64,000 nucleotides of DNA, from contig OZ281494.1 in assembly GCA_965637545.1 (NCBI GenBank), forward strand, positions 5,084,001 through 5,148,000, in the 5' to 3' direction. The stretch's first letter is position 1, and every line of letters starts with the position of its first letter. Source of the DNA: Phallusia mammillata. Its lineage: Eukaryota. Made by a program: the position numbers and the translations under genes. Under the pieces are notes generated by a model. That model was not told the DNA's origin and searched no databases. It worked only from the letters and a program-made list of their open reading frames with translations. Shown piece after piece: positions 1-52,789 of the stretch.

Positions 1-3000
1 CACCAATTTCACAATAAGATTGTAGGCCTCGATTGCTTCCAAAAATTTACTGTTGTCTGGTAAAAATTCTGCTGCTGAAATTATCTTTTCTAAGTGGTTA
101 AATACAGCAACAAGAAGAAAATATGCTTGCTTTTCAGTTTTAAATATTTTGTCGTTATTTAATATCTGTCGTAATTCTGTCGAAGTTTCTGAATTGAAAG
201 CAAATTTAGGAAATCGTTCAATCATTGCTTCCGCTGCAAGAACAAATAACCTTGCAAATTCTTTTTTCTCCAATTCTAATTTGCAATAAACTGCCATTGA
301 TTTTTCTAATAACTTTACATAAACCCTAACGGAATGTGAGCAAAAGAGAGAAACTGATTTTATAAGAATTCTGACAATTTCGTCATATGCATACGTAAAG
401 GATTCAGTGCTAACCACTTTGTTTAGCAAAACGATCAAAGACCTGCAGTCATTATCAGTTTTTATGGAATCCAAGGCCAAGTCAAAAACGACAAGAATGG
501 TAGTTAGCAGATCATCATCAAAAATCTTATGACCGCTAATCAACCATTTCAAAAAATTCAAGTATATCTTGCATTTAATGGTTTGCGGATCAAAACACCT
601 GAGTTTTGCTAATGTTGTCGGAAAGCTTTCGTTGTCTTCCAGATCCAACATTGATATCATGGCAGCTCTTCGTCTTTTCTGTAACTTGTCGTCGGGTACA
701 AATTCTGGAAAGCAGCACTTGCCTGTTAGTGTTGAATAGCAATATTGTATAACTTGCTGGTATCGTAAAGTTTACCAAGCATGTCGTGCATCATTGCACT
801 GAATCGAACGAGTTTGTTGGAAGTTTCCTTTTTCAACCCATCATCGACAACCTTGACAAGTTTGCAACAGATTTTAATTGCATAGGGGCGTTGTTGACTG
901 CAGCGACATGCTTGTTTTATGTCAGGCAGATGTTGTAACAAAGATTCGATTGGATTGTAACTTGGTTTGTACGAGATTTTAAAAGCATTTTGCTTTGACA
1001 AGGTTATGGTTTGTTCAGCAAATTCCATCCAGCCATCAATCGCGGAATTATAGTGACCCATCTTTCCTTCACATAACGCTATCGCTTCCTTTACATACAA
1101 AATGTGTAATATGTGTCTTTCGTCCTTGTAGTATTTTTCCATCTTGTCTAATGCATTTTGATAATGCGAGATTGCTAAGAATGGAACTTTGCTTTCATTC
1201 AACAAGCGGTCACCTGCAATCACCATGACTTCAATTAGTTCTGGAACTAAATCGGAATTCTCTTTGCACAAATCGTTCAGAACGTTGACAAACGACTCAA
1301 TGGTATATTCGTCGGTCTCAGAAAATGTTGACTTGCAAAAGTAACCATGTGCCTTTTTCATCAAACTTTGAGTTGTGTCCACGCCCCTTAGTTTTCTTTC
1401 GTTAAGTGCCTGGAACAGCAAAATGCGACCTCGTTCCATATTACTGTCCAAGTGGCAATTTTCTTCAGCTTTGAAAAAATGTTGATAAGCAATTTCATAT
1501 TGACTTTTGCTGTAATAACATCTGCCTAACATTAAGTGAATGTCGGAAATTTCATTAAAAAGATTCCTTTCGTCGTGATTTGAAACGTGTTTCAATTGCT
1601 TCGTAAAACAGTCAATCGCTTGATCGTATTGCTCAAAACGAAACAAAACACTTCCATGTGAGTAAAATACATCAGTTGTGTTTAATGGTTTGAGTCCACA
1701 GTTGCTGTCAAACGATGTAACTAAAGATTCTTGGAACTGAGTTCCGACGCAAATCAAATGTTGCAAGCCTGAAATATACACCGTTTCTAAAACGTCGGAT
1801 CTTTTCTCTCAGGATTTCAGGATTTCAGGATTCGATTTCCCACCCGCTAATGCATCCTTTTGTGCCCCTTGGTCAAAGTACGTTTTTGCACGAGCATAGT
1901 TGGCAATGGCAACCGCAATTTTGATGTCGGCACAAAATTCAGTGTTAATTAACTTCTTTTCATGTAAGCCTTGAATAATATCATATGACGATTCTCCATT
2001 GATCCCAAGCAACATTCCCAATTGTGGTAGCAATATAGTAATTCCTCGGTAAAGATCTTTCTTAACATGAACTGCTTGGCCATGGTTTAACTTGCGATAA
2101 CTGTACTTTGAAATGTCGTTGTGAATATTGTCAACCACCTTGCTCCTGCATTTTTGAATTTTCATTTTTTTAGCAATTTTGTCTCTTATTTGGATGTGAA
2201 AAGTTGCAGCTACTTCTTTACCAGTTGGTTGACCTTCTTTGTTTTCGCCAGAAACAAATACCGAATATGAAATAATATCTGCCAGGTGATAACCTTCCTT
2301 CAGCTCTATTTCCTCATCAACAAACCTCAACATATTATCCACAGTTTGTATCAATTCTGTGTGCCAAGGTTTGTTTTCAGTCGGCAATCTTCCCAATGGA
2401 TTTTTACAAGCATGAGGTAGAAAACCGTCGACGGAGAGTCCGCGTCTTGTTGTAACATCAACAAACCAGTCACCACCTTCTGTCTCAAAATCATTAAGAG
2501 ACTTTATACCCATTGCTGGTAAAATTGTCTCTCCCAGTCCGATGACCATGAGTTGAGCCAACATTGCGTAGTTACGAAAGTAGTTCATCACAACATTGTC
2601 AACTGCGAAGTTATTTTGCAACACCAGAATACTCTCAAAATCTGAAAATGGGGTTACTTCACGTTGTGCGAGAGACCCTAGCCCTAAGACTGCAAACGAA
2701 CATGGAGGTTTGCTCATTATAGTTAGACAATCTTCAAAAACGGTTTTAATGAATTGCGAAAAACTGTGTGCTACAACACCTTGGTATGCTTCCATGGTTC
2801 CTTGAAATTTAAGTTTACTTTCATTGTTTCCACTTTCTTCGTTTGTAAATGGGTACTTAATTTCCAGAAAACTTTTGAGCATTTCTTCTCTCATAACTTG
2901 TAAATTGTTTTGATTTTTTTCTGTCATTGACATGAACAACTCTAAGCTGTTCTCCCGTTCGATTTTACAAAATATAGAATCGTATAAAGAAATCAGTTTC

Positions 3001-3491
3001 TGCTTAGTTGTGTCAAACAAACGTGGCCATTGCTGCGATCGCTCCAATGCAGCTTGATATAAAGCAGCACTTCGCAACGCATCGAATCTGGCAGTTTTGA
3101 GGTCAGAATTTCTAACAAACTTTTTATGATAGACTTCAGCCAACATGAAAATAATGTGAGAAGATTCAAAGGTGTTTTCTTTCTTTCTATTTTCTTTGAA
3201 GACTGTTTTAAGCCGTGTAGCAAGCGTTTTTTCCTGATGATCTAAAAAAGTGTATTTTGTTAGGTTTAACAAATGGTTACCACGTTGGCTACAATTAGGT
3301 CGACAAGATATACGCAAGCAGTGAGTTCTATTGTGTGTTGTGTGTACAGTGTGTGTACAACCATGTTTTGATACCATGAATGTGAAAAGAGAAAGCATTG
3401 CCTGCTCACTAGGCATTGTCTTCGTGTTTCGGGTCGCAATTTGATCTTTGTGTAAGTCAAAGCATGTTTTCTTACCTAAATCATCTTCCAT
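1..3491 (-). pseudogene. NTase-TPR paralogue copy 1 (disrupted; runs off the left edge of the window)
   Basis: 16-nt exon 1 at 3491-3476 (ATG GAA GAT GAT TTA G|GTAAG); acceptor TTTAG| at 3242. ORF 1809-3497 has GLGSLAQREVTPFSDFE. In-frame TGA at 1811-1809 from an (AATCCTGA)x3 expansion. ORF 726-1781 is the TPR part and ends in a second stop (QH-TAA). Homology with further indels continues to base 1 (NDKIFKTEKQAYFLLVAVFNH...EAIEAYNLIV). Confidence 0.9.
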
Positions 3492-4439
3492 TTTCACGGC
3501 GATGTTTTTATGACAATTTGCATTGTCACGTGGTTCAGTAGCTACCCCAGGCTAAACTTAACTTCACTGTCAACAAGTGTCTTACATACACAAGAAATCT
3601 ACAGTCAATACGCTATAGGTTAAACATGTGTTTGATATAAAACCGCTATATATCAAAACCACAAAAATATTTTAAATAAGAAACTGCTCCATACGAAGTG
3701 CCCTATATATTTGCTCCATGAAATAGAACACGGTTGTATAGAATCCATCTGAATCCGCTTAAAACAGCCATGGGTAAAAACCTGTTAGTAGTGGCTCTCA
3801 ACCTTTCTTACCATGTGACCTCTTTGGTTTACTCTGCGATTATCGGTGCGTACCTAGGCCGACTAAATATAATGCACGACATAATTATAAGCTGACAATG
3901 ACTGAAAATCACAACAAACTACAACATCAGTTTATTGTTCGATCATCTACTAACATTGACTTGATTGGAATTAATAAGACGAAACATTTAAAAACCCAGT
4001 AAATACAGAAACTAGCTGCTTCTCCTAAAAGCAATTCAAACTTTGTTTGTTATTTCAACATGGCGTGAACAAATTGAACCAAAATACTTCCACAACTGTG
4101 GGTTATTTTTGTCATACTATAGTTAAAATGTCTCAAAAATGAATGTCACTCTACAACAAAACCTAAAGCGCAGTTACGTGAACAGGCAAAAACAACTCTC
4201 GAATCTGTCCTATAAAAAAGTTCTGTACTGATAATACCTACATCGTATATAGCCTTGTGGAAGGCAGGTTTTATAGCAACCAGCATATCGGCAGCCAGTC
4301 CTCAAATTTACAAGATCAACTTTGCTTTGGTCCCAAGCATTGATCCAAAGTCGCTTTGTCAAAATTTTATCTGGCATTTAAAGGTTGGCTTTTGTGTTTG
4401 TTCTGCAAATACAGGGTAACTGTCTTGGCGGGGTATAAC

Positions 4440-9689: not shown

Positions 9690-12600
9690 ATGACTGACGA
9701 TTTAGGTAAAAATACACACAATGTCCAAACCTGTAATTATGAAATGATGAATAACTTTATGTCTTGTATTCTTTTTTAAAGTATCATAGATCAGGGCTTC
9801 TCAAACTGTGGGTCGCGACCCCAACACGGGACAATTTGTAGCACTTAAAAGAGTATTACCGGCCTATTAGCCATATGAGCCAGACATTTTATGCCTACTG
9901 TGTGCAAACAATGCGAAAAAGCAGATACCACAAGCGTCACAATTATAGATTATGACGTCATAAAAACTAAGACTGACAATCTGTGTATCAAGTAAAAAAT
10001 TAATTGGGCTTTTTTAGGCGCCATTAGATGGTATATATATAAAATATAAGTATTTCTTTACATCATAGCCATAAAGGGGTCGCGTAGAAATTTATGTTTC
10101 AAAATAGGGTCGCAGAGCAAGAAAGTTTGAGTAGCCCTGTCATAGATGCCATCTGGCTAACTTAGGCCATCTGAGGCAATGTTAAAAAATAAGTTTTAAT
10201 ATATAAACGCTGCTGGTTCAGTTGCGCAAAAAATTTGGGTACATTTTGACTAAATATAAGTTATCGATACAAAGGGAAAGAAAAATTCGACCTGTTAATG
10301 ATGCATGTGATCTGTTTAGATCGCCAAGAAGAGAAGATTGGTACGCGACTTAGAAAAGTCTGCAATGAGAAGGGAGAAGAAGATGAAGAAAAGATTTCAG
10401 AATCAGCAAACATGATTTCGCATTTGGGAAAGATTTATCATCAAAAATTTTGCCTAAATTCTGACGTTAAAACTGCAAGATTTGATGCGTTGCGAAGTGC
10501 TGCTTTATATCAAGCTGCATTAGTGAGGTTCAAAGCAAATTCCGATGCTTTTCATGCAACTAAGCAAGAGCTGATTTCTTTGTATGGTGATGTTTTTCGA
10601 TTTATTCATAAAAGTGACAATCCAAACGTTTTGGAATTTATAACAAAGAGAATCAGAAACAAATTAACAATAATGAGAAATCAACTCACAAAAAAGTTCA
10701 ACAGAATTGAATACCCATTCAAAGATGAAACCAAACCTAACAAACAAAGTGAAATTGAATTTCAAGAAAAGATGAGAGAATACCAAAATATGGTGACAAC
10801 CAATTTCACGAAAATAATGCAGGGTGTTTTTGAAGACTGTTACACTGTAATGGGCGAACCCCCATGTTCGTTTGCAGTGCTAGGATTGGGATCCCTGGCA
10901 AAAGACGAAGTGACTCCATTTTCAGACTTCGAAAGCATTCTGGTGTTGCAAAACAACGTAAAGGTTGACGATAACGCGATGAACTACTTTCGAAACTACG
11001 CAATGTTGGGTCAACTCGTGGTTATCGGACTGGGAGAAACGATTCTACCAGCAATGAGTATAAAATCTCTCAATGATTTTCAGAAAGATGGTGGTGACTG
11101 GTTTGTTGATGTTGTAACGAGACGAGGACTTTCTTTCCCTGGTCTTCTATCAACTGCTTGTAAAAATCCATTGGGAAGATTGCCGACCAAACACAAGCGT
11201 TGGCACACAGAATCGATACAAACTATGGATGATAAGTTGAGCTTTGTTGATGTGGAAATAGAGCTGAAGGAAGGTTATCACCTAGCAGATATTTATTCAC
11301 GATCAGTATTTGTTGCTGGTGGCGACAAAGAAGGTCAACCAACTGGTGAAGAGGTGGCTGAAACTTTTCACTATAAAATTAAAGAGAAAATTTTACAAAA
11401 GTTAGGACATGAGTTAAATAAACTTAAACTATTTGTTCTCACAAAAAACGACATTGCAACATTCAGTTTTCAAAAGCTCAAACTTGGTCAGCCTGTTTAT
11501 GAAAGCATATATCTTTACAGAGGCGTTACCATATTGCTACCACAATTAGCAATGTTACTGGGCGATATAGGAAATTCATCGTACGGCATTATTCAAGGTT
11601 TACTTGACAAGGAATTAATACATCCTGACTTTGCTGTTGACCTTAAAATAGCGGTTGCTATTGCCAACTATGCTCTTGCAAAAACCTGCTTTGATAAAGG
11701 TGCACAACGGGATAAACCTCCTGATGGAAAAACAAATTCAGATCATAAAGGATCAGACGTTTTGGAAATTGTTTCAATTTCCGGTTTACAACATTTGATC
11801 TGCGTAGGAACTCAGTTTCAAGAATCGTTAGTTACATGCTTTGACAGCAACTATGGAATTATACCATTAAAAAGAAACATCGACAATATTTTGCCTGGAA
11901 GTGTATTGTTTCGTTTTGAGCAATACCAGCGTGCAATTGATTGGTTTAAACTGCAGTTGGAGTGCGTTTCCAATGACGACAATAACGACTTTTCAAAACA
12001 ACTATACCATATTCACCTTATGTTGGGCAGATGTTACTACAGTAAGAATCAGCACCAAGCTGCTTTAAAGCATCTCGAAAAATCCGAATATTATTGCAAA
12101 ACTGAAAATATTTTGGAACGTGGGCGTTTGTTACTTTTCAATGCACTTAACCAACAAAAACTTGGACACATGGATACAACCTTCGAATTAATGAATATGG
12201 CTAAAGATTGTTTATGTCGTGTTCAAAAGTCAGATTCAGACGAATACATTATTGAGTCATTTATCAACACTCTACAAGATTTGTCTAAGGAGAATCCTGA
12301 TTTTGTTCCAGAACTAATTGAAGTCATGGTGATTACAGGCGACCGCTTGTTGAATGAAAGAGACACACCATTTTTAGCAATCTCTCACTACCAGAAGGCA
12401 TTAGAACAGACGGAAAATCACTACATGGACGAAAGACACATATTACTTAAACTGTATGTAAAGGAAGCGATAGCAGTTTGTGAAGGAAAGCTGGGACATC
12501 ATGGTTCCGCGATTGATGGCTGGTTGGAATTTATCGAAAAAAGCAAAAGCCTGGCAAAGCATGATGCTTTGCAAATCTCATTTAGGCCAAAATACAATCC

Positions 12601-15109
12601 AATATTATCTGTGTTACGACATGCGCCAGACATAAAAGAGGCTTTTCTTAGTACTCAACAACGTCCCTATGCAATTAAAATTTGTTGCAAGCTTGTTGAA
12701 ATCGTCGATGATTGGTTAACACTTCGACTTTCTGACAATCTCCTCCGATTTAGTGCAACGTTGAACGACATTTTTGGTGATCTTTATAGCAGAAACAATA
12801 ATAAAAAGTGTCGTAATCTTGCTTTGCAACACTATAGGATGGCAAAGTGGACATTTGCTCAATTGAGTCAAAGTTCGAACTATGCTAAAGACGGGAAGTT
12901 TATACTACGTCAGCTCAAAACATTACCTTATCAACAGAAACCACATTTTCTAGTTTATTTTGATGTTTTAAACCTCTCAATAGCAGCAGTGTTTTGCAGA
13001 ATGTTGATGTGTTGTCAGAGATTCTTGCAGTCGTTGACAAAGTTTTATCTCCGATTGGGTTTCACAAAAATTACAGAGTATTGACTGATTTCCTTTTAAA
13101 ACTTATTCGGCACACAGCTCACAGAGGCGTGAGTGAAAAGATGTTGAGAATTCTAAAGAAATGGGTTACTCTTATTTGTTCACAGGGCGTTTCTGAGTCC
13201 ACAAAAACACTACAGGATTTTGTGGAAATATATTCAAACATGAAAACTAATAAAGAAAAATTTTCCAATTTTCTTATTTTGTTAGTTACAGCAGTGATAG
13301 AAACATTTCCCACTTTAATCTTCGATGAAAAAACAACATCCGAGTTGCAAAAACTTTTACATGATGACAGTGTGGAGAAAACAGAAAAAGAACGCTTTTT
13401 TCTCAATGTTGCTGTGTTTAATCGGGATGAGAAAATGATAGACTTAACAGATGCTGTGGCTATGCTGAAACCACTACCTATCAATACCAAGACTACATTA
13501 TGGATGAGAATGTCAGCAGCAGAATGTTTAAGAAACAATCAAAAATTTTCCGAGGCAATACTGGCGTACAACTTAATCCTGGTGAAACTAACAAACACAT
13601 TAAATATGTCAAACAACGAAAAGCAATTATTACTTGTCCAAGTATTACTCGCGATTGCATGGATTTCGTTTGAACAAAACCAAACAGATCTAGCTGTTAC
13701 ATCGTACAAGCATGCTTTTAGGCATATTGAAAAGGGAATTGTAGTAAGTCAAACTGCAAGCTGGTTGTTTGAAATAGCCGAGAAACTTGAAAAACGCAAT
13801 GCACATGACTTTCTGCTAAGATACAGAAACTTGCTATTGAACAGCAACGCATACACGATTTTAAAACCAACCAGTCTTGAGGAACTGCGCTTGCTTATTC
13901 AATTTACAAACACGCCACATAACGGAATAAATCAAATTCACAGCCGGAAATCCTGTACAAACTCGCCTTGTGGACAAGCCATATACTTTCTTGCGAATAT
14001 CAAATTGAGGAGGTGGTGACAGTCGTTGACTTGCTGCTGGAAAGATTTTTTTCTCTTTCCACACAACTTCCAAGAGCAGTCAACCCTCAACCGTTGGTTT
14101 ATGCATTACATGAAATTGGTAAAAACAAGCTATTTTGTTCTGCAAAACTACTTCAGGAGCAAAGACTTATGGTGGGTAAAAAAATATCATTTTTCTGATT
14201 CGTTGTTTGCGTGAATGTTGTTTTTACCCAGTGCATCATGGTTAACCTTCTCTGTTTGCTTACGGCAGCACCAAAATGTTAATGTGCAATGTTTTTTCTT
14301 CAGCTCTTGATATGCATAAACGTACAATTGTTTGAAACCCGAAGCAAAAAGCGTTCGTAGAACCAGTAATAAACACATTTGTTTTTTTAGAGCACCGTTA
14401 GTGCACTGAAAGAAAATCTTCAGGAATACGATTTTCTTGTGGCTCTCCTAAGCCTTTCAACTATCTTTGTAATAAACAATCTTCCTTTGAAGGCCCAACA
14501 GTGTATACACGAGGGCTTAGAAGTCAAGTCAAGAAATTTAAATGTAAATGACCAGCGGTACGAATAATCTAATTTGGACTTACACTATTTTAACAACATA
14601 TATATTATTGGTATTTTTCCAAACTTTCGATGTATTTTGTACAAGCTGCCATATGTAAATTATGAAGTCGAAAATGGATGTATTTCGAATTTACATACTC
14701 ACAAAAGTTAAATACATTTTAGTTTGTTTGATCAAGCATATGTGTGTTTTACAGATTCAAAGTGGCCTTTTTAGCACAACTCAGCTGGTGCTGTATGAAA
14801 ACGAAGGACCTAACTGCAGCGTGGAAGCATCTTACATCAGCAATGAGAATTTCTGCTTCAATTGCTGGCGACGAAGCATTTCATCGAAAACAGCTCACTG
14901 CTTGTGAGTCCACTACACGCACTGAGGCCACATTGATGGAAACTGTTAAATATTTGTTGAATCTAATCAAAACCGATTATTTTCATACAATGTCTAACCT
15001 GATCCATGTGAATAACATACTTAACTCATACGATGATCTCCAAAATTACGCTCGAACGACTAACTGGTTTGATATTTGTTCTCCTCTGGTTTCCTATACC
15101 AAATTCTAA
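9690..15109 (+). pseudogene. NTase-TPR paralogue copy 2 (two frameshifts, altered catalytic region)
   Basis: Predicted exons 9690-9705 (ATG ACT GAC GAT TTA G|GT), 10320-14171, 14391-14557, 14755-15109. Motif GLGSLAKDEVTPFSDFE at 10889-10933. 4-nt deletions relative to copy 3 near 12980 and 13943 split exon 2 into ORFs 10298-13084, 12994-14019 and 13968-14198. Confidence 0.88.
9792..10139. mobile_element. hAT (Buster/Charlie-type) MITE in intron 1 of copy 2
   Basis: TIRs CAGGGCTTCTCAAACT / AGTTTGAGTAGCCCTG; perfect 8-bp TSD TCATAGAT. Confidence 0.92.
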
Positions 15110-30811: not shown

Positions 30812-31011
30812 AATATCACAGACTACACTGTTCGCCATTGTTGTATAGCAAACGACAATTCCATTTAAGCTGTCTTGAAAGTTGCTGACAAGGTTTCGAA
30901 AAAGTCATAACAGTGACATTGTAAAACCTCTCACACCAACTGCCACACTTTGTAATAAACACGAGGCACAAGTAGCAAATAATTAGCCTATCACATTCAA
31001 ATACATACTCA

Positions 31012-34000
31012 CAACTAAGCAAAAGCTGATTTCTTTGTATCATGATGTTTTTCGATTTATTCATAAAAGTGACAATCCAAACGTTTTGGGATTTATAACA
31101 AAGAGAATCAGAAACAAATTAACAATAATGAGAAATCAACTCACAAAAAAGTTCAACATAATTGAATACCCATTTAAAGATGAAACTAAACCTAACAAGG
31201 AAAGTGAAATTGGATTCCAAGAAAAGATGAAAGAATACCAAAATATGGTGACAACCAATTTCACGAAAATAATGCAGGGTGTTTTTGAAGACTGTTACAC
31301 TTTAATGGGCGAACCCCCATGTTCGTTTGCAGTGCTAGGATTAGGATCCCTGGCTAAAAACGAAGTAACTCCATTCTCAGATTTTGAAAGCATTCTGGTG
31401 TTGCAAAACAATGTTGAGATTGACGATGCTGTGATGAATTACTTTCGAAACTACGCAATGTTGGGTCAACTCGTGGTTATCGGACTGGGAGAAACGATTC
31501 TACCAGCAATGAGTATAAAGTCTCTGAATGATTTTGAGTCAGAAGGTGGTAAATGGTTTATTGATGTTGTAACGAGACGCGGACTTTCTTTTGACGGTCT
31601 TCTACCTCATGCTTGTAAAAATCCATTGGGAAGATTGCCGACCGAAAACAAACCTTGGCACACAGAATTAATACAAACTGTGGATAACATGTTGAGGTTT
31701 GTTGATGAGAATTTAGAGCTCAAGGAAGGTTATCATCTGGCAGATATCATTTCACATTCAGTATTTGTTGCTGGTGGCGAAAAAGAAGGTCAATCAACTG
31801 GTGAAGAAGTGGCTGCGAATTTTCACAGTCAAATAAGGATCAGATTTGAAACAAAGTTAAAAAGTCAGAAAAACAAAAGTCAAATTATTAACTCTATGCA
31901 AAACGACATTGCAACTTACAGTTTCCAAAAGTTAAAACATGGCCAGTCCGTTCATGTTAAGAAAGATCTGTACAGAGGAATTACCATATTATTGCCACAA
32001 TTAGCAATGCTGCTTGGCATTGTACTGACCCAGTGGGTAGACAATTAACAACACTGCCGTATATCTGACTCTAATAAACAAACAAACTATCACTGTCGAA
32101 ACAAACCTAAAAAGACGCAAACCGGTTTAACGTTCCCCCATTATATTTCAATAAGGCATGCCACGAAAGCGCCTCTTGCGGCTAAACACGCAACACAAAA
32201 GTCACCGCGCACGAATCAACTGTGAGACATCAATTCTAATGCGTACTCTAGTCACTTAAGGTAGCTTAAGGTAACTTAAGGTAACTTTAGATAACTTAAA
32301 GTAACTCTAGATGACTGATTTTTAGTTTGAAACACGTCGGTCTTTATAGCGTTCAGGTCATATAGTTGTTATGCGGCATAGTTATAAAAACGTACGCCCG
32401 AAAAGATTAACTGTGTTCTAAACCGTAATTATTCTTTAAATTGCTTATAGAAGTGTCAAGTTTAACATGGCTGGAAGCAGATTAAGACGTTGCTTCACGT
32501 TAACACGTAAGGGGACGATAAAACGATAGCCTTAAGCAGTAATTGACCGGTTTAGTGATAAGAAAAACAGGTTTAAATAGCCGGTCAAGCTTTTGTGTAG
32601 AAAAAAGGCGAGTTATGAACGGGTTTGACCGGGCCAATGGCTACGTCACACAATTACATGCAAGTTTTAAAATTAAAAGTCCAAAGTCCGATGTATTTTG
32701 AATTAAAAGTCCAAGGTCCGATACAGCATCAAGGGAGATTCTGGTTACGAAGTTATCCAATGCTTACAAGAAAAAAAATTGATAGATGATGACTTTGCTG
32801 TTGACCTTAAAATTGCGGTTGCCATTGCCAACTATGCTCGTGCAAAAACCTATTTCAACAAAGGGGCGCAATGGGATGCATTAGCTGGTGGAAAAGCCAA
32901 TCCCAATCAGAAAGGAACCGACGTTTTGGATATTGTTTCAATTTCCGGTTTGCAACATTTGATTTGTGTCGGAATTTACTTCCAAGAATCATTGGAAACA
33001 TCGCTTGACAACACTTGTGAATTTAAACCACTAACAAGAACTATCGACAATATTCTTCCAGGGAATGTTTTGTTTCGTTTTGAGCAATACGATCAAGCGA
33101 TTGCCTGGTTTACTACGCAGTTGGAATGCGTTTCCGGAGACTTTATAGAGATCGTACCCGAACAAATCTCCCGCATTCACCTTATGCTCGGCAGATGTTA
33201 CTACAGCAAGAATCAATACGATATTGCTTCCCATCATCTCATTGAAGCCGATAATAATTGCAAATCTGAAAATGATTTGGTACGAGGTCGCATTTTGCTT
33301 TTCCAGGCACTTAACGCACAAAAACTAGGACAAGTAGAAAAAACTCATAGTTTGATGGAAAAGGCTTACGATTGCTTTAGCAAATCGAAATCGTCCGAGG
33401 CAGACGAATACACCCTTGAATCGTTTGTGGATATACTACAATATTTATGTAAAGCCAATAACGATTTGGTTCCGGAACTAATTGAAGTCATGGTTATCGC
33501 TGGGGACCGTCTTTTGCATAAAAACAATGCACCATTCTTAGCAATCACGCATTACCAGAACGCCTTGTATGAGATGGAGAAATACTATAAGGACGAAAGA
33601 CACACATTACTTATGATATATGTTAAGGAAGCCACAGCGATATGTGAAGGAAAGTTGGGTCATTATGTTTCCGCGATTGATCTCTGGTTGGATTTTACCC
33701 AAAGGAGTATAAACATGCTAAAGCAACATGCTTTTGAAATCTCATTTAGACCAGGGTACGACCCGATCGACTCCCTGTTAAAACATGTGTCCGACATAAA
33801 ACATGCATTGTACAACAGTCAACAACGTCCCTATGCAACTGAAATTTGTTGCAAGCTTATCAAGATCGTCGATGAGTGGCTAACACTTCGACCTTCTGAC
33901 AATCTCTTTCGATTCAGTGCAACGATGAACGACATTCTCGGAGATCTTTACAACATAAGCAATAAAAAAAAGTTTCATAATCTTGCTATTCAGCACTATA

Positions 34001-36197
34001 GGAAGGCAAAGAAGACTTTTGAACTGTTGGATCCGAGTACGACATACTCTAAAGATTGTGAATTTATTCTACGCCTTCTCAAAACATTACCTCTTCGCTT
34101 TTTAATGTTTAGTGCACTACATTTTCAAGATTATTTAAATGTTTTGAAGCTTTCATTGGACGACTGCAGTGTCCTAGAGAACACTTATTTGTTATCGGAA
34201 ATTCTTACAGTTGTTGACTCGCTTATAGATTCAGCAAGGGATCGCGATAATGACTGCGAAGTATTGACTGATTTCCTTTCAAAACTCATTCGGTACACAG
34301 TCCACAAGGGCGTGAGTGAGAAGATGTGTAAAGTTCTTGTGAAATCGGTTACTCTCTTTTCTTCACTGAATTCTGCTAAATCCACAAAAACAGTACAGGA
34401 AATTGTGGGAATATATTCAAACATGAAAAATGATAAACGAAAATTTTCTAATTTTCTTATTCTATTAGTCACAACAATCATAGAAACATTTCCCAGTTTG
34501 ATGGTTAATGTACAAACAACATCCCAATTGCAAAAAATTTTACATGATGACAGAGTAGAGGAAACAGAAAAAGAACGATTTTTCCTCAACGTTGCTGTGT
34601 TTAATCGTTTTCAGCAAATCATAGACTTAACAGATGCTGTGGCTCTGCTGAAACCACTACCTATCAACACCAAGGCTACAATATTAATGCAAATGTCAGC
34701 AGCAGAATGTTTAAGAAAAAATCGAAATTTTTCCGAGGCAATAATGGCATACAACCTAATCCCGGTAGAGCTAACAAACACATTAAATATGTCAAACGAT
34801 GAAAAGCAATTAATACTTGTCCAGGTTATGCTCAGAACTGCTTTAGTTTGGTTGGAAGGGAATCAATCAAATCTAGCTGTTTTATCTTTCAAACATGCTC
34901 TGCAGCACATCGAATCTCTGGAAAAGAAAAATATTGTGTTGGATCAACCTGTAAGCCAGTTGTTTAAAATAGCCGAGCAGTTACAAAAACGCAATGCACT
35001 TGACGATTTTCTCATATACAGGAACTTACTGCTAAACGGGGACTTACACAACATTTTAAAACCAACTAATATTGAGGAACTGCATTTGCTTGTTCAGTTT
35101 ACAAACACGCCATATGATGGAATAGATCGAGTTGACAGATTACCAGAAATCCTGTACAAAGTTGCATTGTCGCCAATGTTAAGTTCTTGTAATGATGAAG
35201 ATAATCAGAAGAAAGTCGTTGATTCACTGCTTGAAAGCATTGTCGCCCTTTCAACCGAACTACGTTCTGATGTCGATCTCCAACCATTGGCTTATGCACT
35301 ACGCGAGATTTGCAAAAACAAACTAGATTGTTCTGCACATCTACTTCAGAGCCTGATTTCTTCGGTAGGTAAAATATAGTGTCAACTCATTTGAACTATC
35401 TTTGCTGGTGTTGTTATTGGCCAAAACGTAACACAACTTTACCTAAATCATTAGTGTTGCTTTGCTATACTTCTGCTTCTGTTAATGTACATAAACGTGA
35501 CATTTTTCCAACCGGGAACAGAAGGTCTTGTATGAGTAACAAACAAATTTGTGTTATTCAGAGCTTGATTTTTTCATTGGAGAGAAAACTTCATCTGTAC
35601 GATTTCCTTGTAGCCCTACTGAGCTTTTCAACTATCTTCATGGCAAAGGATCTTCCATCTGACGCCGTACGTTTTCTATTGAAAGGCTTGAAAGGAATCA
35701 GACAAAGAAAAATGCGTGCAAAAGAGCTGGAAAGGTAGGAATAATTTGTTAAGATTTAACACTTTAACATATATCATCGTCATCTCTACTAATTGTTCTT
35801 CCTATTTTGCAACGTTGCTGTTCATACACATATTTATACATATCTATAAATAAGTTACAAATTTTAGATTTTGTACAGTTAAACACGTATATATTTTAAC
35901 AGGTTTGAAGTGGCTTTTTTAGCACAACTCAGTTGGTGCTGTATGAAAACGAAGGACCTGACCGCAGCGTGGAAGCATCTTACACCAGCATTAAGAATTT
36001 CTGCTTCATTTGCTGTTGACGAAACATTTCATCAAAAACAATTGACAGTTTGTGAGTCCAAATCACGCACTAAGGAGACATTGATGAAATCTGTCAGATA
36101 TTTGTTGAAGCTGGTCAAATCCGATTATTTTCATCAAATTCCTGGACCGCCTTGTGACTTTTACTCAGACACATATACATTATTACCCTCGTACTGA
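31012..36197 (+). pseudogene. NTase-TPR paralogue copy 3 (5' end lost, interrupted by a solo LTR)
   Basis: Homology starts abruptly at caactaagcaaaagctg; exon 1 and about 80 codons are absent. Motif GLGSLAKNEVTPFSDFE. Removing 32021-32725 plus one TSD restores GIKGDSGYEVIQ in frame. Exon 2 ends 35364; exons 35562-35734 and 35903-36197. Confidence 0.9.
32021..32725. mobile_element. 705-bp solo-LTR-like insertion
   Basis: Starts TGTA, ends TACA; 4-bp TSD GCAT (32017-32020 and 32726-32729); non-coding; internal ~10-bp tandem (TAACTTAAGG) and a duplicated 3' motif. Confidence 0.82.
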
Positions 36198-39100: not shown

Positions 39101-39780
39101 CTAGTCTCTGCAGTATTTTAACTTTGCAAAATATGTCGTAATGACAATTGCACAGCAGTTTGATTTAGCTTACATGCAGGAATATACTAAAACGGAAATA
39201 GTAACAGTCGTGCAAACATGTTAATCATTTGTCGGTCATGCCGGTTATGTTGCAAGAGGAATAAGATCAAACAAAAACGGATGTAACTTTGTTGCAGACT
39301 CCAATGTAGATGATGAAGATAAGAAGACAAATACGTTTTCCCAAAGCAAAAGGAGTCGTAGCTCAATTAGCAGTACAAATTGTGTAACTTGTATTGAAAA
39401 ATGCAGTGTTGAAAGTTTAATTGTTGAATCCCTAATAAGGTCTAACATAGTTTCAATATACGAATATGCATCCTATTTGTGTCCTATTTGACTTTTTGGA
39501 CGGTTGTAAATAAGAGTGGTGTTGTTGGTTTTGGTAATTTATGCATGAATGTAGATTGGTTAAAGAAGTGGAGACGTTTTTGGAAAATGTGTTTTTCCAA
39601 CACGTCAGGAAAAAAATATTTATTTTTAGTTGCTACTCTACATTCATTCTCTAAGTTTTAAAAATTGTAGTTCGTTGCTGTTTGTCTTGGTTAAACTAGG
39701 CCAAATTTTTACTTGCAACTGCTTCTGACTTAAATATGTGCAACAATCAAAAATAAAAGAACTTCAACAACAACATCAAC

Positions 39781-42700
39781 ATGGAAAGCCGGTTAGGTAA
39801 GAAACTAATTTCTACAATTGATACAAATTGTAACAAAATACAATTTTCGATTTGCAAGACACGTTTTTCATGAACATCAACGTCATTTAAAAAAATTGCA
39901 TATAAAAACACATTTTTGTATACCTGAATGCTCTGAGCTTTTGACGAAAAAGTGGAAAAAAAATCCACTAAACCGAATGCTGTCATGCACTTTCAGAGCA
40001 ACAAGAAAGAGAACTTGTGGCGAAACTTAAAACATTCTGCAATGCGAAGGGAAAGGAAGAAAATATTTTTGAATCCTCCAAAATTATTGCTTCATTAGGA
40101 GAAGTCTACCATAAAAAATTTAACTATAACACAGTGCTAAAACTGGCCAGATTCGATGCATTGAAAAGTGCTGCCTTGTATCAGGCTGCATTAGAGCGAT
40201 GTAAGAAAAGGCCAACTTTGTTCCGCGCAATAAAACAAAAATTAATATCCTTGTACGATGATATATTTTGTGCAATCGACCAAAGAAACAACACAGAATT
40301 GATGGCAGAGATAATCAAGCAAAGTAGGAATAACTTAGATGCAATGAGAAATCAATTGATAGAAAAATTTAACCAAATAAATTACCCTTTCAAACTTGAA
40401 ACTAAAAGCAATAAGGAAGAAGAGATTAAGTTTCAAACTGTACTAGAAGAATACCAAAATGTTGTAACTGAACAATTTACTCAACTTATGAGAAATATTT
40501 TTGATCGTTGTTCCAAAGTAATAGGCAAACCCCCATGTTCTTTTGCAGTGCTGGGTTTAGGGTCTCTAGCCAAAAACGAAGTAACACCTTTCTCTGACCT
40601 TGAAAGTATTATTGTGTTGCAAAACAATGCTGTAGTTGACGATACTGTGATGAACTATTTTCGAAACTACGCAATGATGGCTCAACTTGTGGTCATCGGA
40701 CTGGGAGAGACAATTCTACCAGCAATGAGTGTAAAGTCTCTGAACGATTTTGAGACAGAGGGTGGTGACTGGTTTGTTGATGTTGTAACGAGACGCGGAC
40801 TTTCTTTTGATAGTCATCTACCTCATGCTTGTAAAAATCCATTGGGAAGATTGCCGACCAAAGAAAAACCTTGGCACACAGAATTGATACAAACTGTGGA
40901 CAATATGTTAAAGTTTGTTGATGAGGAAATAGAGCTGAAGGAAGGTTATCACCTTGCAGATATTATTTCACATTCAGTATTTGTTTCTGGAGGCAGCAAG
41001 GAAGGTCAACCATCTGGTGAAGAAGTGGCCGCAACTTTCTATAATTGCATACAATCGAAAATTGACAAAAAGATGAAAAGTCAGACAAGCAAGAGAAAAC
41101 TTATTGCAACTATTCAGGAAGACGTTTCAACGTACGGTTTTCATAAGTTGAAACATGGACAATCAGTTCACGTAAAGAAAGATCTTTACAGAGGAATTAC
41201 AATATTAATGCCACAATTAGCAATGTTGCTGGGTATCAAGGGAGGATCGTCATACATAATTATTCAGCGTTTATTTGAATGTAAAATTATAGATAACGAA
41301 TTTTGTCTCGATCTTAAAATTGCTGTGGCCATTGCCAACTATGCTCGTGCGAAAACCTACTTTGATAAAGGGGCACAATGGGATGTTCTATCTGGTGGAA
41401 AATCCCATTCTAAACAAGTAACAGACGTTTTGGAAACTCTTTCCATGTCAGGTTTGCAACTTTTGATTCGTGTAGGAACTCAGTTTCAAGAATCGTTGGC
41501 AATATCGTTTGACATCGAATGTGGAGTCAAACCATTAAAAGTAAAACATAAAAAGTATTTCCCACTCGGAAAGATATTCTTTCGTTTTGAGCAATATGAT
41601 CAGGCAATTGAATGGTTTGAGAAACAATTGGAACATCTTTTAGTGAGCTACGAAGATAACTCTTATATGAAAATCTCATACGCTTACCTAATGTTGGGCA
41701 GATGTCATTACAGCAAAAATCAACATGAAGCTGCTTCTGCATACTTCTATAAAGCTGAAAAATATTGTCATGGAGAAAACAATTTGCAACGTGGTCGTAT
41801 CCTGCTTTTCCAGGCACTTAGCGAACGAAAATTAAAAGGCATAGACACAACTCAAAGTTTGATGAAAAGGGCTCATAATTGCTTTTGCAAGTCAAAATTA
41901 TCCGAGACGGATGAATACACAATGGAGTCATTTGTCGTGATTCTGCAAAGTTTGTGTGAAGCAAATTTTGATTTAGTACCAGAACTAATTGAAATTATGG
42001 TGATTACAGGTGACCGCTTATTGAATGAAAGCAATGCACCATTTCTGGCAATCTCGCACTACAAGAATGCATTGTACGAGATGGAGAATTACTATAAGGA
42101 TGAAAGACACATATTACACATTTTGTATGTAAAGGAAGCGATAGCAGTTTGCGAAGGAAAGTTGGGTAATTATGATTCAGCGATTGATCTCTGGTTGGAA
42201 TTTGCAGAAGGGACCAAAAACACGCCAAAGCAGCATATTTTCGAAATCTCATTTCAGCCAGGGTACGACCCAATCGAATCTCTGATACAACGTCGGTCTT
42301 ACATAAGACAAGCTTTTGTGGACAATCAACACCGCATCAATGCGATTGATATCTGTTGCCAACTTGTAAAGATTGTCGATAAATGGTTGAATAGTGACTC
42401 ATCTAAGAAACTTCTACGATTCAGTGCAATGATGAACGACCTTCTTAGCAATCTTTACGAAAGAAACAAAGCTTACGATCTTGCCATTCAACACTTTAGA
42501 ATTGCGAAAGAGGTTTTTCTTGGTTTGTACCCAACGTCAAATTATGGCGAGGACAAAGAAGTTCGTCTTCGTCTACTTAACACAACAACTGGTCGAGTGG
42601 CGACAAAAGATATTTGCATGTCAGCATTAAAAGTGTTTGTCAAACTAGATCCAATGCAAACAGAATTTTATTTGTATATGGACGTTCTAAACAGATGTTG

Positions 42701-44758
42701 GGAAACATATGAGAGTCGGCTGACATCGGGATTTTGTTTGTCTCACGATAATGATTTGTTATCTGGAATTCTTACTGTTGTTGATTTGGGTTTAATTTCA
42801 GTTAAGGACTGTAATGACTGCAGATTGATGTTAAATTTTGTTCTGACTCTGGAACGCCATTCAAACACTACGTCTATAGACAATACACTGGTCAAATTTT
42901 TCATAAAATTGTTTCCAAGTTTTTGTTTGAGTACCCCAGAAAGCTTTAAGCATTTAGTTGAAGAAACCGTGGCGATTTATCGCAGTCCAAACAGGGAGGA
43001 AAAAAATATCCGTAATTTCCTGATACGTTCTTCTGCAGCAATGATAAACAAGTTCCCAAGGTTTGCATTCAATGTGCAAACGTCAACTGAAATAAGAACC
43101 ATTTTAAACGATGATAATATATTTAAAACAAAAATAGAAGAATTTTATCTTCGAGTTGCAGTTTTTAACCATTTTCAAAAGGTGAACGATCTACCAGAAG
43201 CTTTGAAGATGTTGGAACCGTTTCCTGTAAACACAAAAACGACGATATTGATGCGGATTTCGGCTGCAAAATATCTGGTGGCAAATGACAAATATACTGA
43301 GGCAACTATTGCTTACAATCTTGTCGTGACAATGGTGGCTGAGAACTTAGACATGTCGAACATTGAAAAGCAATTAATACTGGTCCGTGTAACGCTTCAC
43401 AATGCACTAACATTAATTCTTCAAAACCACCCACAACTTGCCATTTTATGGTGTGAAGATGCCCTAAATCATATTGAAAGCTATATGGAATATACAGTTG
43501 AAGATGTTACAGTGGATGAATTTAAAACACAGTTGGTAAAAATAGCCGTTAAGCTAAAGCAAAGCGAGGCACATGATGAGCTAACAAAATATAGGGCTTT
43601 GCTGTTGAATGGAAACGTAAATCTGATTTTGAAACCAACCAATATCGAGGAACTACATTTGCTTATTGAGTTGACAAACACGCCACATGTTGCAATAAAT
43701 CGAATTGACAGATTGCCGGAAATCCTCCTTAAAGCCGCATCTTCGCCAGTTTTAGTTTCTTGCAATGATACAAATAGTAAGAAGAAAGTCGTTGATTTGC
43801 TGCTTGAAAGAATCTTGGAAATTGCAACCGAACTTCCAAGTGGCTCTGATCTCCGACCCCTGGCCTATGCTTTGCGAGCGATTTGTAAACAACGACTTGT
43901 TTGTTCTGTTGAACTCTTACAAGAAGTGAACTCTATGGTAAGTGGATCAAGATTTCAACTTTTTCTTGGACCTTTTTGCGTGCCTACATGATTAGGACAA
44001 CATCTGTAGCATAAACCTGTAAAAATTCTCTGTTTTCGTTCTTACCGAAATTAAGAAATATCTGTTGGGTTTAGTTACAAAGAAAAGTCGCGTATATTTT
44101 TCAGAAATTCGTCGCTACGATAAAAGAAACTCTTTCGTTTGACGATTTCCTTGTGGCTATGCTGGCCCTTTCGACAATCTGCATGGTAAACCACCTTCCG
44201 TCCAAATCACAGCAATGCCTTCGTGAGGGTTTGCAAATGTTTAGAGGAAAAGAAAGTCCTGAAGACGACGTCTTACTCAGCCGTCAAAAGTGCGTTTAAC
44301 TTAGGCAAAATTGACATAAAACAACGCAAACCGTTATCCTATAATCTTAATCCTATAAAAATCCTATATCCAATAAATTATAGTCAAATCTAATCAATCC
44401 TCCCATTTGTAACTACCATACACTTGTACAGTATCACTTCTGATCGAATTACTACACTAACGTTAATGTGCATTTATGTTTTGGCAGGTTCCAAGTGGCC
44501 TTTCTTACTGAACTCAGCTGGTGCTGCATGCAACTGAACGAACCAATACAGGCCTGGAAGCATCTTACTTCGGCATTAAGGCTTTCCGCACAATTCGCCT
44601 ATTGCCCAGAAAAGTATCAAAGACAGTTGGTGTCTTGCGAATTGATTTCCCGCAACATGGCAACATGGACAAAAGCTGTGAAATATTTGTTGGTTTATTT
44701 TGAACGCGATTTCTTCAACATAATTGCTGAAAGTCGATTAGGATTTCAAAATGCGTAA
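39781..44758 (+). CDS. NTase-TPR paralogue copy 4, intact: nucleotidyltransferase (DUF294/GlnD/GlnE-like) plus TPR solenoid, predicted 1470 aa
   Basis: Predicted exons 39781-39796 (ATG GAA AGC CGG TTA G|GTAAG), 39997-43937, 44105-44289, 44488-44758 total 4413 nt in one open frame. Motif GLGSLAKNEVTPFSDLE at 40560-40604. TPR-like units GKIFFRFEQYDQAIEWF and LMLGRCHYSKNQHEAASAYFYKA. Exons 3-4 have homologues in copies 2 and 3. Confidence 0.88.
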
Positions 44759-49789: not shown

Positions 49790-52789
49790 ATGGAACATTG
49801 TTTGGGTAAGAATATATTGTACATCGACATTTAAAGTATGTTCTATTGTATTTTAGCTAATTTCTAATTATATCAAAACAGTTACACGAAGCATGAAGCA
49901 TGAAGTTTATAGCAACGAAAATAGGACTAGACTCGTGCATGTTTTGACGTGTTTTGGCATGTACAAAGGAATCGTTCCTTATACGGAAATCAAAGACACT
50001 GTGCTTCAGTTTGCAGTTATTCGGACGTCATTTATAGAAATGTATTAACTTGTTTATTGTAACACATTTAGGGGTTCTGTTACAAAATTTTCTAATTTTG
50101 CGTTGCGCTAATCTTGCTCTGATGAATAAATTGTTTAAGGCAATGAATATACTTTTTATTTTTTGGCAGACTTCGAAGAAGCAAATCTGGCTCCGCAATT
50201 GAGAAAGAATTGCAATATCAGAGGGGAAGAAATAAACATATTTGAAACTTCCAAAATTATTTCATCGCTGGGGGAAATCTACCATGAAAAGTTCAACAAA
50301 TACCATGACCTGAAAACTGCAAGATTTGATGCTTTACGAAGTGCTGCTTTGTATCAGGCTGCATTGGAGCGGTCTATAGAATGGCCAACTCTGTTTGACA
50401 CAACCAAATCAAAACTCATTTCTTTGTATGATTCTGTTTTTGGTGCAATTAACAGAAAAGACTATTCAAAGTTGTTTGCATCGATAGTAGAGAAATGTCG
50501 AAACCAGTTACAAACGATGAGAAAGCAACTAGAAGCGGAATTCAATCAAATTGAATACGCGTATCAAGACGAAACCAAAGACCACAAAGAAAATGAAATC
50601 GTGTTTCAAGGAAAAATGGAAGAATACCAAGATAGGGTGACTAAGTGTTTTACCGATTTTATGAGAAATGTTTTTAATGACTGTTCAAGCATTATGGGCG
50701 AACCCCCATGCTCATTTGCAGTGCTAGGATTGGGATCTCTTGCAAAACAAGAAGTAACTCCATACTCAGATTTCGAAAGTATTCTGGTGTTGCAAAATAA
50801 CTTCGAAGTTGACGATACAGTAATGAATTACTTTCGTAACTACGCAATGTTGGGTCAACTCGTGGTCATCGGACTGGGAGAAACGATTCTACCAGCAATG
50901 AGTGTGAAATCGCTGAATGATTTTGAGACGGAGGGTGGTGACTGGTTTGTTGATGTTGTAACAAGACGCGGACTTTCTTTCGACGGTCTTCTACCACACG
51001 CTTGCAAGAATCCATTGGGAAGATTGCCGACTGAAAACAAACCTTGGCACACAGAATTGATACAAACTGTGGATAATATGTTGAGGTTTGTTGACGAGGA
51101 AATAGAGTTGAAGGAAGGTTATCATCTGGCAGATATTATTTCTCATTCAGTATTTGTAGCTGGTGGCAACAAAGAAGGTCAACCATCTGGTGAAGAAGTG
51201 ACTTCAACTTTTCACAGTCTTGTAAGGCAGAGAACCGGAGAAAGAATCCAAAACCAAAAAAGAAAAACCAAAATTATTGACACTATTCTAAGCGATATTG
51301 CAGCATATAGTTTTCGAAATTTGAAACATGGGCAATCAGTTCATGTAAAAAAAGATCTGTACAGAGGAATTACCATATTGCTACCACAACTAGCAATGTT
51401 GGTTGGCATCAATCGAAAATCATCATATGACATTATTCAGAGTTTGTTAGAAAAACAAATAATTACCAGCGAATTTTGTATCGATCTTAAAATTGCGGTT
51501 TCCATTGCCAACTATGCTCGTGCAAAAACCTACTTTGACAAAGGGGCACAATGGGATGCATTAGCTGGTGGAAAATCGAATCCTGACCAGAAAGGAACCG
51601 ACGTTTTGAAAACTGTTTCCATTACCGGTTTGCAACGTTTGTTTTGTGTCGGAACTCAGTTGCAAGAATCTTTAACAAAATCGTTTGACAACAACTGTGA
51701 ACTCAAACCGTTAAACACAACCACTGTATGTTTCTCGCTCGGAAGTGTTTTGTTTCGTTTTGAGCAATACGATCAGGCGATTGACTGGTTTATAAAACGT
51801 TTGGAAGATATTTCAACGAACGAGAAGAAAGTCTCTTCAAGCGAAATCTCTAACATTCACCTTATGATAGGCAGATGTTACTATAGTCAGAATCATCATG
51901 AGGCTGCATCTGAACATTTTTATGAAGCCGAAGAAATTTGTCAAAAAGAAGATAGTTTGCAACGTGGGCATATCTTGCTTTTTCAGGCACTTAGCGAACG
52001 AAAACTTAGAGGCATGGACACAACACAAAGTTTGATGAAAATGGCTCAAAATTGCTTTCGTAGCTCACAACCTAAACCTTCAGACGTCTATACGATTGAG
52101 TCGTTTGTTGACACACTACAAGATTTGTGTAAAGACAATTCCGATTTAGTTCCAGAACTAATTGAAGTCATGGTGATTACGGGTGACCGCTTGTTAAATG
52201 AAAGCAACGCACCGTTTCTGGCAATCTCGCATTATCAGAATGCCTTGTACGAGATGGAGAAATATTACAAGGATGAAAGACATATGTTACTTAGTTATAT
52301 GTAAAAGAAGCCATAGCAGTTTGCGAAGGAAAGTTGAGTCATTATGATTCCGCGATTGATGGGTGGATGGAGTTTATTGAACGAAGCAAAAATATGCTGA
52401 AGCAGAATGCTTTTGAAATCTCATTTAAGCCAGGTTACAGCCCAATCGAATCACTGCTGCGACATTCACCCGATATGAAACAAGCATTTTGTGGCAATAA
52501 AAATCTTAGTCATGCAACTGTAATTTGTTGCAAACTTGTCAAGATTGTAGATGCTTGGTTGCATCGTGATTCCTCTAACAAACTCCTTCGATTCAGTGCA
52601 AAGATGAACGACGTGCTTGGTGAACTTTACGAACGAGACAAGAATTACAATCTTGCGATTCAGCATTACGAAGTGACGAAGTCGATTTTTAACATTCTGT
52701 ATCCAAACTCGACATATGCAAAGGACAAAAAAATAACTCACATGGAATGTTCTGCGTCTTCCATAAGCGACAAAATGCAGGACACTTGA
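49790..52789 (+). pseudogene. NTase-TPR paralogue copy 5 (1-nt frameshift, 3' half absent)
   Basis: Exon 1 at 49790-49805 (ATG GAA CAT TGT TTG G|GTAAG); exon 2 from 50170. Motif GLGSLAKQEVTPYSDFE. 1-nt deletion near 52293 (CTT AG TTA TAT). Homology fades near 52730 and exons 3-4 were not found before the next gene. Confidence 0.85.

Follow-up and report, generated by a model that had tools for sequence, protein, structure and literature searches.

What reaction would be carried out by the products of a family of nucleotidyltransferase-like genes in the tunicate Phallusia mammillata? The question is raised by a stretch of 64,000 nucleotides (contig OZ281494.1, positions 5,084,001 to 5,148,000; hereafter the window) that holds five paralogous copies of one gene, each with a G-x11-D-x-E signature. 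The original prediction was that the active site of these genes is of the type found in GlnD, GlnE and DrrA, and not of the cGAS/OAS type. Our analysis of copy 4, the only uninterrupted copy among the five, supports this proposal: the NTase (nucleotidyltransferase) region matches the Pfam family DUF294, DrrA is the top match by sequence, and the predicted fold superposes on GlnE and DrrA at Z scores of 19.8-22.5. We place the five genes in one animal family, whose products would be large cytosolic proteins with a pol-beta nucleotidyltransferase of the GlnE/DrrA/DUF294 type and the helical domain that goes with it.

Sequence and predicted fold place copy 4 beside DrrA and GlnE

The open reading frame (ORF) of copy 4, at 40017-43991, encodes 1324 residues, or ~1336 counting a spliced start micro-exon. 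The protein is laid out as a short N-terminal helical stretch, the NTase, a helical domain that is the constant companion of the NTase, and ~850 residues of TPR-like repeats. Residues 144-220 matched Pfam DUF294 (PF03445) at 29-31 bits against a cutoff of 21, and copy 4 also matched the DrrA model SidM_N (PF20879) at 23.5-26 bits, below the cutoff of 27. NCBIfam returned no GlnE or GlnD equivalog or other informative family for copy 4. A word-indexed search yielded 294 homologues, most of them from amphioxus and others from the tunicates Clavelina and Phallusia, the octocoral Dendronephthya and the annelid Owenia. The best of these was ~41% identical to copy 4, and many, including amphioxus proteins, carry the UniProt label 'Protein-PII uridylyltransferase N-terminal domain-containing protein'. 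We aligned 56 animal modules from octocoral, annelid, amphioxus and tunicates (29-41% identical to copy 4); Pfam matched DUF294 in 56/56, SidM_N in 31/56 and DUF294_C in 27/56, and DUF294 was also present in 16/16 bacterial relatives. A search of solved structures by sequence returned only DrrA (E 0.0098 with the single protein, 1.7e-5 with the family profile), with GSLAKAQATEYSDLD of DrrA aligned over GSLAKNEVTPFSDLE of copy 4.

An AlphaFold model of the 380-residue copy-4 module, built on the 56-module alignment, had a pLDDT of 84.5 and a pTM of 0.87, with strands at 176-180 and 197-201. Foldseek matched this model to DrrA (6yx5) and to the N- and C-terminal modules of GlnE (GlnE-N, 1v4a; GlnE-C, 3k7d) at probability 1.00 and E 5e-7 to 7e-6, and returned nothing beyond these three below E 0.1. 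VIA-align, run without the Foldseek pre-filter, aligned 289-303 residues at Z 22.5 for DrrA, 22.2 for GlnE-N and 19.8 for GlnE-C; DrrA fragments came next (Z 8.7 and 7.9), followed by an aminoglycoside nucleotidyltransferase at Z 6.7. With the same program, the helical part of the model reached Z 7.9 against residues 210-331 of DrrA and Z 5-6 against HEPN domains. The nearest ESM Atlas cluster (TM 0.87) was a eukaryotic 'Protein-PII uridylyltransferase N-terminal domain', and the next were bacterial DUF294+DUF294_C proteins with CBS, cNMP-binding or Cache sensors (TM ~0.70). A structure search against GlnE/DrrA and cGAS had been set beforehand as the test of the original prediction; it favored no unrelated fold, and the GlnE/DrrA reading therefore stands.

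The active site is conserved in animals and bacteria

Pol-beta nucleotidyltransferases in general have the spacing G[GS]-x9-13-[DE]-x-[DE], and GlnE and DrrA are therefore singled out not by the motif itself but by the T-P-x-S-D flanks, the profile and the fold. The motifs that had been quoted for the three bacterial enzymes hold. The fetched E. coli sequences read G161-x11-D173-I-D175 in GlnE and G93-x11-D105-V-D107 in GlnD (GRGELHPLSDVD), and reviews give G-X11-D-X-D for DrrA and the glutamine synthetase adenylyltransferase (PMC12409994) and a degenerate form, Gly-X11-[DE]-X-[DE] (PMC8097203). Aligned with hhalign to single E. coli sequences, the G-S...D-x-D block scored E 0.0038 with GlnE and 8e-4 with GlnD.

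Conservation was read from the 56 animal modules and 16 bacterial relatives, with residues from G182 to R444 in copy-4 ORF numbering. G182, S183, T190, S193, D194 and E196, which make up GS...TPxSDxE, and G261 further on were kept in 56/56 animal and 16/16 bacterial sequences. The second acid is Glu in 72/72 members and is a hallmark of the family. K273 was found in 56/56 and 14/16, and D265, the Asp of the FD motif, in 54/56 and 16/16. D265, preceded by a hydrophobic stretch in G-[LIFV]-x-F-D, is the sole downstream Asp kept family-wide (70/72 sequences), which is in keeping with its earlier nomination as a candidate third carboxylate. By eye, the FD-x-H-L...PL surroundings of D265 resemble V-D223-M-R-L...PL in GlnE (D223 counted from the fetched sequence). 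E231, in the GETILP motif (56/56 and 15/16), is an alternative candidate for a metal or substrate ligand. D255 (WFxD; WFVD in copy 4), invariant in the 56 animal modules, was considered as the third carboxylate and rejected, since it is kept in just 9/16 bacterial members.

K387, R392 and R444 of the helical domain recur in 15/16 bacterial modules, and a profile search aligned the V-K-x4-R of this domain to S-V-K-T-H-I-M-R of DrrA. The region around these three residues may contribute to binding of the nucleoside triphosphate (NTP).

Copy 4 as a candidate sensor-coupled protein NMPylase

We lean towards the reading that copy 4 is a Mg-dependent, sensor-coupled enzyme that attaches a nucleoside monophosphate (NMP) to proteins, an NMPylase. 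In such an enzyme two Mg2+ ions would be coordinated by D194, E196 and D265, and the NTP phosphates would be bound by the G182-S183 loop together with K387/R392 from the helical domain. The three characterized relatives, GlnE, GlnD and DrrA, all modify protein tyrosines (PMC8097203, PMC12409994); the NMP, AMP or UMP, would likewise be transferred to a protein hydroxyl. The variable TPR arm would pick the target, or would sense a ligand that turns the enzyme on.

The arm is the most divergent part of the protein between paralogues (37-43% identity). Pfam TPR_12 matched it at residues 517-581 only, and its language-model features weakly resemble those of TPR/SPO22 proteins. A phmmer comparison of the C-terminal 844 residues with 120 other family members gave one weak TPR-type match (P0020) and no usable similarity. 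Motif and Pfam checks of copy 4 found no Walker A motif, NB-ARC or NACHT; the P-loop module of STAND proteins is absent, and among the relatives it occurs solely in four gammaproteobacterial proteins.

A family role in biotic conflict or self/non-self recognition is plausible: the genes are expanded in tandem, many copies have decayed, the arm is variable, and in bacterial relatives the NTase is fused to NB-ARC/TPR (STAND) modules. The case is circumstantial, since PADLOC recognized no known defense family and gave copy 4 just a weak generic TPR match. The bacterial relatives touch one PADLOC candidate model, PDC-M70A, over 46 residues at E ~1e-5.

The PADLOC result is one of several observations that weigh against a sensor-coupled NMPylase. 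No family member with a known activity, substrate or nucleotide preference was found, and Pfam lists of the animal homologues contained no Death, TIR, CARD or NACHT domain. GlnE-N, which removes AMP, fits the model as well as the domains that add it. Four of the five window copies are broken. When aligned to a single GlnE sequence, hhalign placed the D265 stretch differently (8.7% probability), and the case for D265 is one of conservation, not geometry; we distrust the extension of this alignment over D223 because a GlnE strand there falls on a confidently predicted helix. Of weaker force, no transcript was found at 39700-44100 in four small putative RNA sets from the organism, which comprised contigs only and whose RNA label is a guess. 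None of the listed sequencing runs that contain the copy 4 locus is on record as RNA; neither result shows that the gene is silent.

An enzyme with this fold might instead make a diffusible signal, a cyclic or linear oligonucleotide released after the TPR arm senses its ligand, with no protein modified. The pairing of a sensor with an NTase, and the NB-ARC/TPR-fused bacterial relatives, would suit a signal-generating immune enzyme. The chemistry is compatible with the fold, which by itself does not decide the matter, and among the weak fold matches is the minimal NTase Hailong HalB (9dbh, Z 5.4), which makes oligodeoxyadenylate. Copy 4 also shares with cGAS, OAS and the CD-NTases the pol-beta superfamily and its generic G[GS]...[DE]x[DE] site. 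In other respects they differ: the CD-NTase DncV reached only Z 4.0 in VIA-align, cGAS and OAS were unlisted in both the Foldseek and VIA-align searches, and Pfam found no Mab-21, OAS or CD-NTase match in copy 4. The three characterized relatives are all protein-modifying enzymes, and no receptor or effector partner gene is visible within the window. We therefore rate a signal synthase as rather unlikely and retain the protein NMPylase as the working reading.

The window holds one intact gene among broken paralogues

A six-frame regular-expression scan of the whole window for GSLA-x2-EVTP[FY]SD[FL]E gave exactly five matches, one per paralogue, as had been noted. Also as noted, the GLS[FV]D motif follows in four copies, as GLSVD in the minus-strand copy and GLSFD in copies 3, 4 and 5; the exception is copy 1, which reads GLSFP and has thus lost D265 to Pro. 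In a tblastn map the five copies are 59-73% identical to one another, so their agreement is not independent evidence, which comes instead from the deep conservation described above.

This array bears on the possibility that the protein is a non-catalytic scaffold or a nucleotide-binding pseudoenzyme and that the genes are a decaying remnant. Stops, frame changes, insertions or truncation mark four of the five copies (Table 1), copy 1 lacks D265 and is probably a pseudogene, no C-terminal third of copy 5 was found in the tblastn map of the window, and no transcript was found in the putative RNA sets. Against this stand the clean 1324-codon frame of copy 4 and the invariance or near-invariance of the Gly-Ser pair, the Asp, the Glu and D265 in 72 sequences, which would be unexpected in a pseudoenzyme. 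Between copy 4 and each paralogue, the ratio of nonsynonymous to synonymous substitution rates (dN/dS) was 0.16-0.31 in the NTase (dS 0.55-0.8), the lowest of all regions, and 0.24-0.42 in the regions with dS below 1; dS there was 0.55-0.9 and elsewhere was saturated. These low ratios at such dS values argue that the copies are old duplicates that were constrained as working genes for most of their history and decayed later. We accordingly regard a pseudoenzyme as unlikely.

An animal gene family with relatives in intracellular bacteria

An earlier scan of bacterial genomes with the full-module alignment and a single animal-specific pattern gave zero matches. Scanning one genome per species with two motifs from a 10-row core alignment, ExTP[FY]SD[LF]E and FDGx[ML]P[WHY]A[CS]K, returned 16 loci with 26-44% identity. 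They come from Parachlamydiaceae, Rhabdochlamydiaceae (including the complete chromosome of a Dictyostelium symbiont), Holosporaceae, uncultured Chlamydiae and two gammaproteobacterial metagenome-assembled genomes (MAGs); the closest belong to bacteria that live inside cells (Chlamydiae, Holosporaceae and a gammaproteobacterium). The animal profile covers the whole ~350-residue bacterial module at up to 297 bits. Some of the bacterial proteins have the NTase-DUF294_C-TPR layout of the animal genes, others are methyltransferase-NTase proteins or combine the NTase with an AAA-like ATPase, and four gammaproteobacterial proteins read NTase-NB-ARC-DUF7779-TPR, with the NTase at the effector position of a STAND protein.

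Two of these genomes deserve mention in their own right. One Gammaproteobacteria MAG (OZ257147/OZ257148, loci L014-L018) holds five paralogues on two chromosomes, four of which are NTase-NB-ARC-DUF7779-TPR proteins of 1700-2300 residues; we found no description of them in the papers searched. In a Rhabdochlamydiaceae MAG (L009:4534-7251), one family member has no TPR arm but a class-I methyltransferase domain ahead of its NTase module.

Relatives that live within eukaryotic cells also suit an enzyme working in reverse, a de-NMPylase that removes AMP or UMP by phosphorolysis or hydrolysis as GlnE-N does, for example undoing AMPylation by intracellular bacteria. GlnE-N uses the same G-x11-D-x-D site (PMC8097203), and its Z score lies between those of DrrA and the adenylylating GlnE-C. 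The direction of the reaction is not distinguishable from sequence, and among the relatives transfer predominates (DrrA, GlnD and GlnE-C). We consider removal distinctly less probable than not, at long odds, and keep NMP transfer as the preferred direction.

In an unrooted maximum-likelihood tree of 72 modules, animals and bacteria were parted by a single branch (ultrafast bootstrap 100, SH-aLRT 98), and a clade of 32 rows (100/99) contained the window copies together with both named tunicate sequences. The module may have had a single origin in animals. The tree, being unrooted, is compatible with transfer in either direction.

The gene structure is that of an animal gene. Read from the sequence, the micro-exon of copy 4 joins the acceptor cag/AG at 39996/39997 in frame. 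This acceptor is kept in all four copies with aligned upstream regions, and the minus-strand copy retains a similar ATG micro-exon followed by GTAAG. The locus is present in DNA runs from three studies. The spliced micro-exon, the conserved acceptor, retroelement insertions, DNA from three studies and the 100/98 branch together identify these as animal genes and not contamination. That they are bacterial DNA, from a symbiont or a very recent transfer, has next to no chance of being right: the main exon is intron-free and the closest non-animal relatives are bacterial, but the 16-nt start exon is spliced through a GT...AG intron, animal-type retroelements lie inside the array, GC content matches the surroundings, paralogue dS reaches 0.55-0.9, identity to bacteria is just 26-44%, and cnidarian-to-chordate sequences share one side of the single branch.

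Comparison with known enzymes

DrrA/SidM, an effector of Legionella pneumophila (3nku, 6yx5), is the closest solved structure by sequence and by fold (289 residues aligned), with a similar signature and an aligned helical domain that includes VK...R. Copy 4 is nevertheless a relative of DrrA and not DrrA itself. The second acid is Asp in DrrA and Glu throughout the animal and bacterial family, SidM_N stays below its cutoff, and copy 4 lacks both the Rab guanine nucleotide exchange factor domain and the phosphatidylinositol 4-phosphate-binding (P4M) domain. The copy-4 family also has a 20-35-residue insert with an invariant GETILP between the DxE strand and D265, and copy 4 is the animal's own gene whereas DrrA is an injected effector.

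Both NTase modules of E. coli GlnE match the whole 380-residue model and share the G-x11-D-x-[DE] site and the helical domain after it. Copy 4, by contrast, has one module where GlnE has two, shows 11-14% identity and no GlnE match in Pfam or NCBIfam, and carries the TPR arm in place of the PII-regulated linker, with no evident link to nitrogen control. Several amphioxus proteins (Branchiostoma P0001, P0002 and P0003) carry two or three NTase modules, which in P0001 lie at ~432-635, 828-1023 and 1221-1537; these may echo the tandem modules of GlnE or may be gene-model fusions of neighboring copies. GlnD aligns to the site through its own motif, and Pfam places the copy-4 domain in DUF294 (PF03445; companion domain DUF294_C, PF10335). 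Copy 4 has none of the HD or ACT domains of GlnD, as Pfam gives DUF294, weak SidM_N and TPR only. The bacterial DUF294 proteins have CBS, cNMP-binding or Cache sensors, whereas the sensor-like part of copy 4 is the C-terminal TPR arm.

The bacterial relatives share with the animal genes the DUF294-helical-TPR core, identical active-site residues including D-x-E and FD(G), and multigene expansion. Some add F-box/OTU (PMC4209131), NB-ARC, methyltransferase or AAA-like modules, and the animals lie apart in the tree. In Neochlamydia, NEX2 is a 50-member family with an F-box-(OTU)-DUF294-TPR layout that likely acts on the host and was proposed to do so within host cells (Domman et al. 2014, PMC4209131). 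By this description it has the DUF294-TPR layout of the animal genes. The presumed targets of the bacterial proteins lie in a host; those of the animal family would presumably be proteins of the animal itself or of an invader.

FICD/HYPE likewise joins a TPR module to an AMP-transferring enzyme (PMC12409994). It differs in having a Fic fold instead of a pol-beta NTase and in being a single conserved gene, whereas the copy-4 family is large, variable and lineage-specific; its activity is demonstrated and that of the copy-4 family predicted.

Significance of a proposed animal NMPylase family

The kind of enzyme is already known, and the domain is annotated automatically in databases. In reviews, the AMPylases of eukaryotes are limited to FICD and SelO, and the GlnE and DrrA enzymes figure as bacterial (PMC8097203, PMC12409994), and in a 2015 survey DrrA-like proteins were confined to Legionella (PMC4454073). 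We found no paper on the animal family in the open full-text literature, a scope outside which most subscription journals lie. What the window adds is an intact and deeply conserved module in intron-bearing animal genes that form large, fast-turnover families. If active, these proteins would be a new writer of protein nucleotidylation in animals and would connect it with effector-like proteins found in Chlamydiae and other intracellular bacteria. This connection makes the family a directly testable candidate for a sensor-coupled effector, for which copy 4 offers a clean construct.

A broader proposal, which we put forward tentatively and think more doubtful than the enzymatic reading of copy 4 itself, is that many marine animals, from octocorals to invertebrate chordates, possess a third class of endogenous protein NMPylase beside FICD and SelO, inherited from or shared with intracellular bacteria. 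In its expanded families the variable TPR arm would sense a pathogen or non-self ligand and thereby switch on the enzyme, which would AMPylate or UMPylate a protein of the host or the invader much as DrrA does. Such a class would give animals a new effector chemistry in innate immunity or allorecognition.

Features of the window

Table 1 Coordinates of the five copies and of the features of copy 4 in the window.
Feature	Position	Strand	Details or basis
Minus-strand copy	1..3497	-	Two in-frame stops and one frame change; runs off window start
Motif, minus-strand copy	2678-2634	-	Six-frame scan
Copy 1	10298..14177	+	Spread over three frames; D265 replaced by Pro
Motif, copy 1	10889-10933	+	Six-frame scan
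Copy 3	30987..35379	+	First ~65 aa missing; directly behind reverse-transcriptase ORF; split by ~700-bp insertion
Motif, copy 3	31344-31388	+	Six-frame scan
Start micro-exon, copy 4	39781..39796	+	16 nt, ATGGAAAGCCGGTTAG, then GTAAGA donor; read directly
Main exon, copy 4	39997..43991	+	ORF list, tblastn map, splice reading
Predicted pol-beta-type nucleotidyltransferase core, copy 4, ~aa 160-330	40494..41006	+	Pfam DUF294, AlphaFold model, fold matches
Catalytic signature (motif), copy 4, G182-S183...D194-L-E196, GSLAKNEVTPFSDLE	40560..40604	+	Six-frame scan, alignments
E231 in GETILP, copy 4	40707..40709	+	Family-specific conserved acidic residue
D265 in GLSFD, copy 4	40809..40811	+	Candidate third catalytic carboxylate, by conservation
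Helical domain after NTase, copy 4, ~aa 331-470, DUF294_C/HEPN-like	41007..41426	+	DUF294_C in relatives, fold matches
Long, fast-diverging, degenerate TPR-like arm, copy 4, aa 471-1324	41427..43988	+	Pfam TPR_12, paralogue comparison
Copy 5	50163..52789	+	One frame change near 52290; ends ~aa 849
Motif, copy 5	50733-50777	+	Six-frame scan

Long ORFs of 447, 263, 174 and 148 residues lie at 22628-23971 (+) and 18156-20190 (+). Pfam assigns them to no family, and they resemble neither the NTase-TPR family nor any other sequence in the window; a transposon, or an exon belonging to a different gene, may account for them.

Retroelement remains lie inside the array. Directly upstream of the truncated copy 3, an ORF of 585 residues at 29042-30799 (+) contains a reverse-transcriptase domain (RVT_1, E 3e-35). 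A fragment with reverse transcriptase-RNase H similarity lies at 27229-27666 (+), and an ORF at 7725-8168 is 66% identical to it. Copy 3 itself is split between residues ~407 and ~406 (copy-4 numbering) by the insertion of ~700 bp at 32022-32724, which contains short tandem GGTAACTTAA-like units and a duplicated 'AATTAAAAGTCCAA[AG]GTCCGAT' near its 3' end and could be a non-autonomous mobile element.

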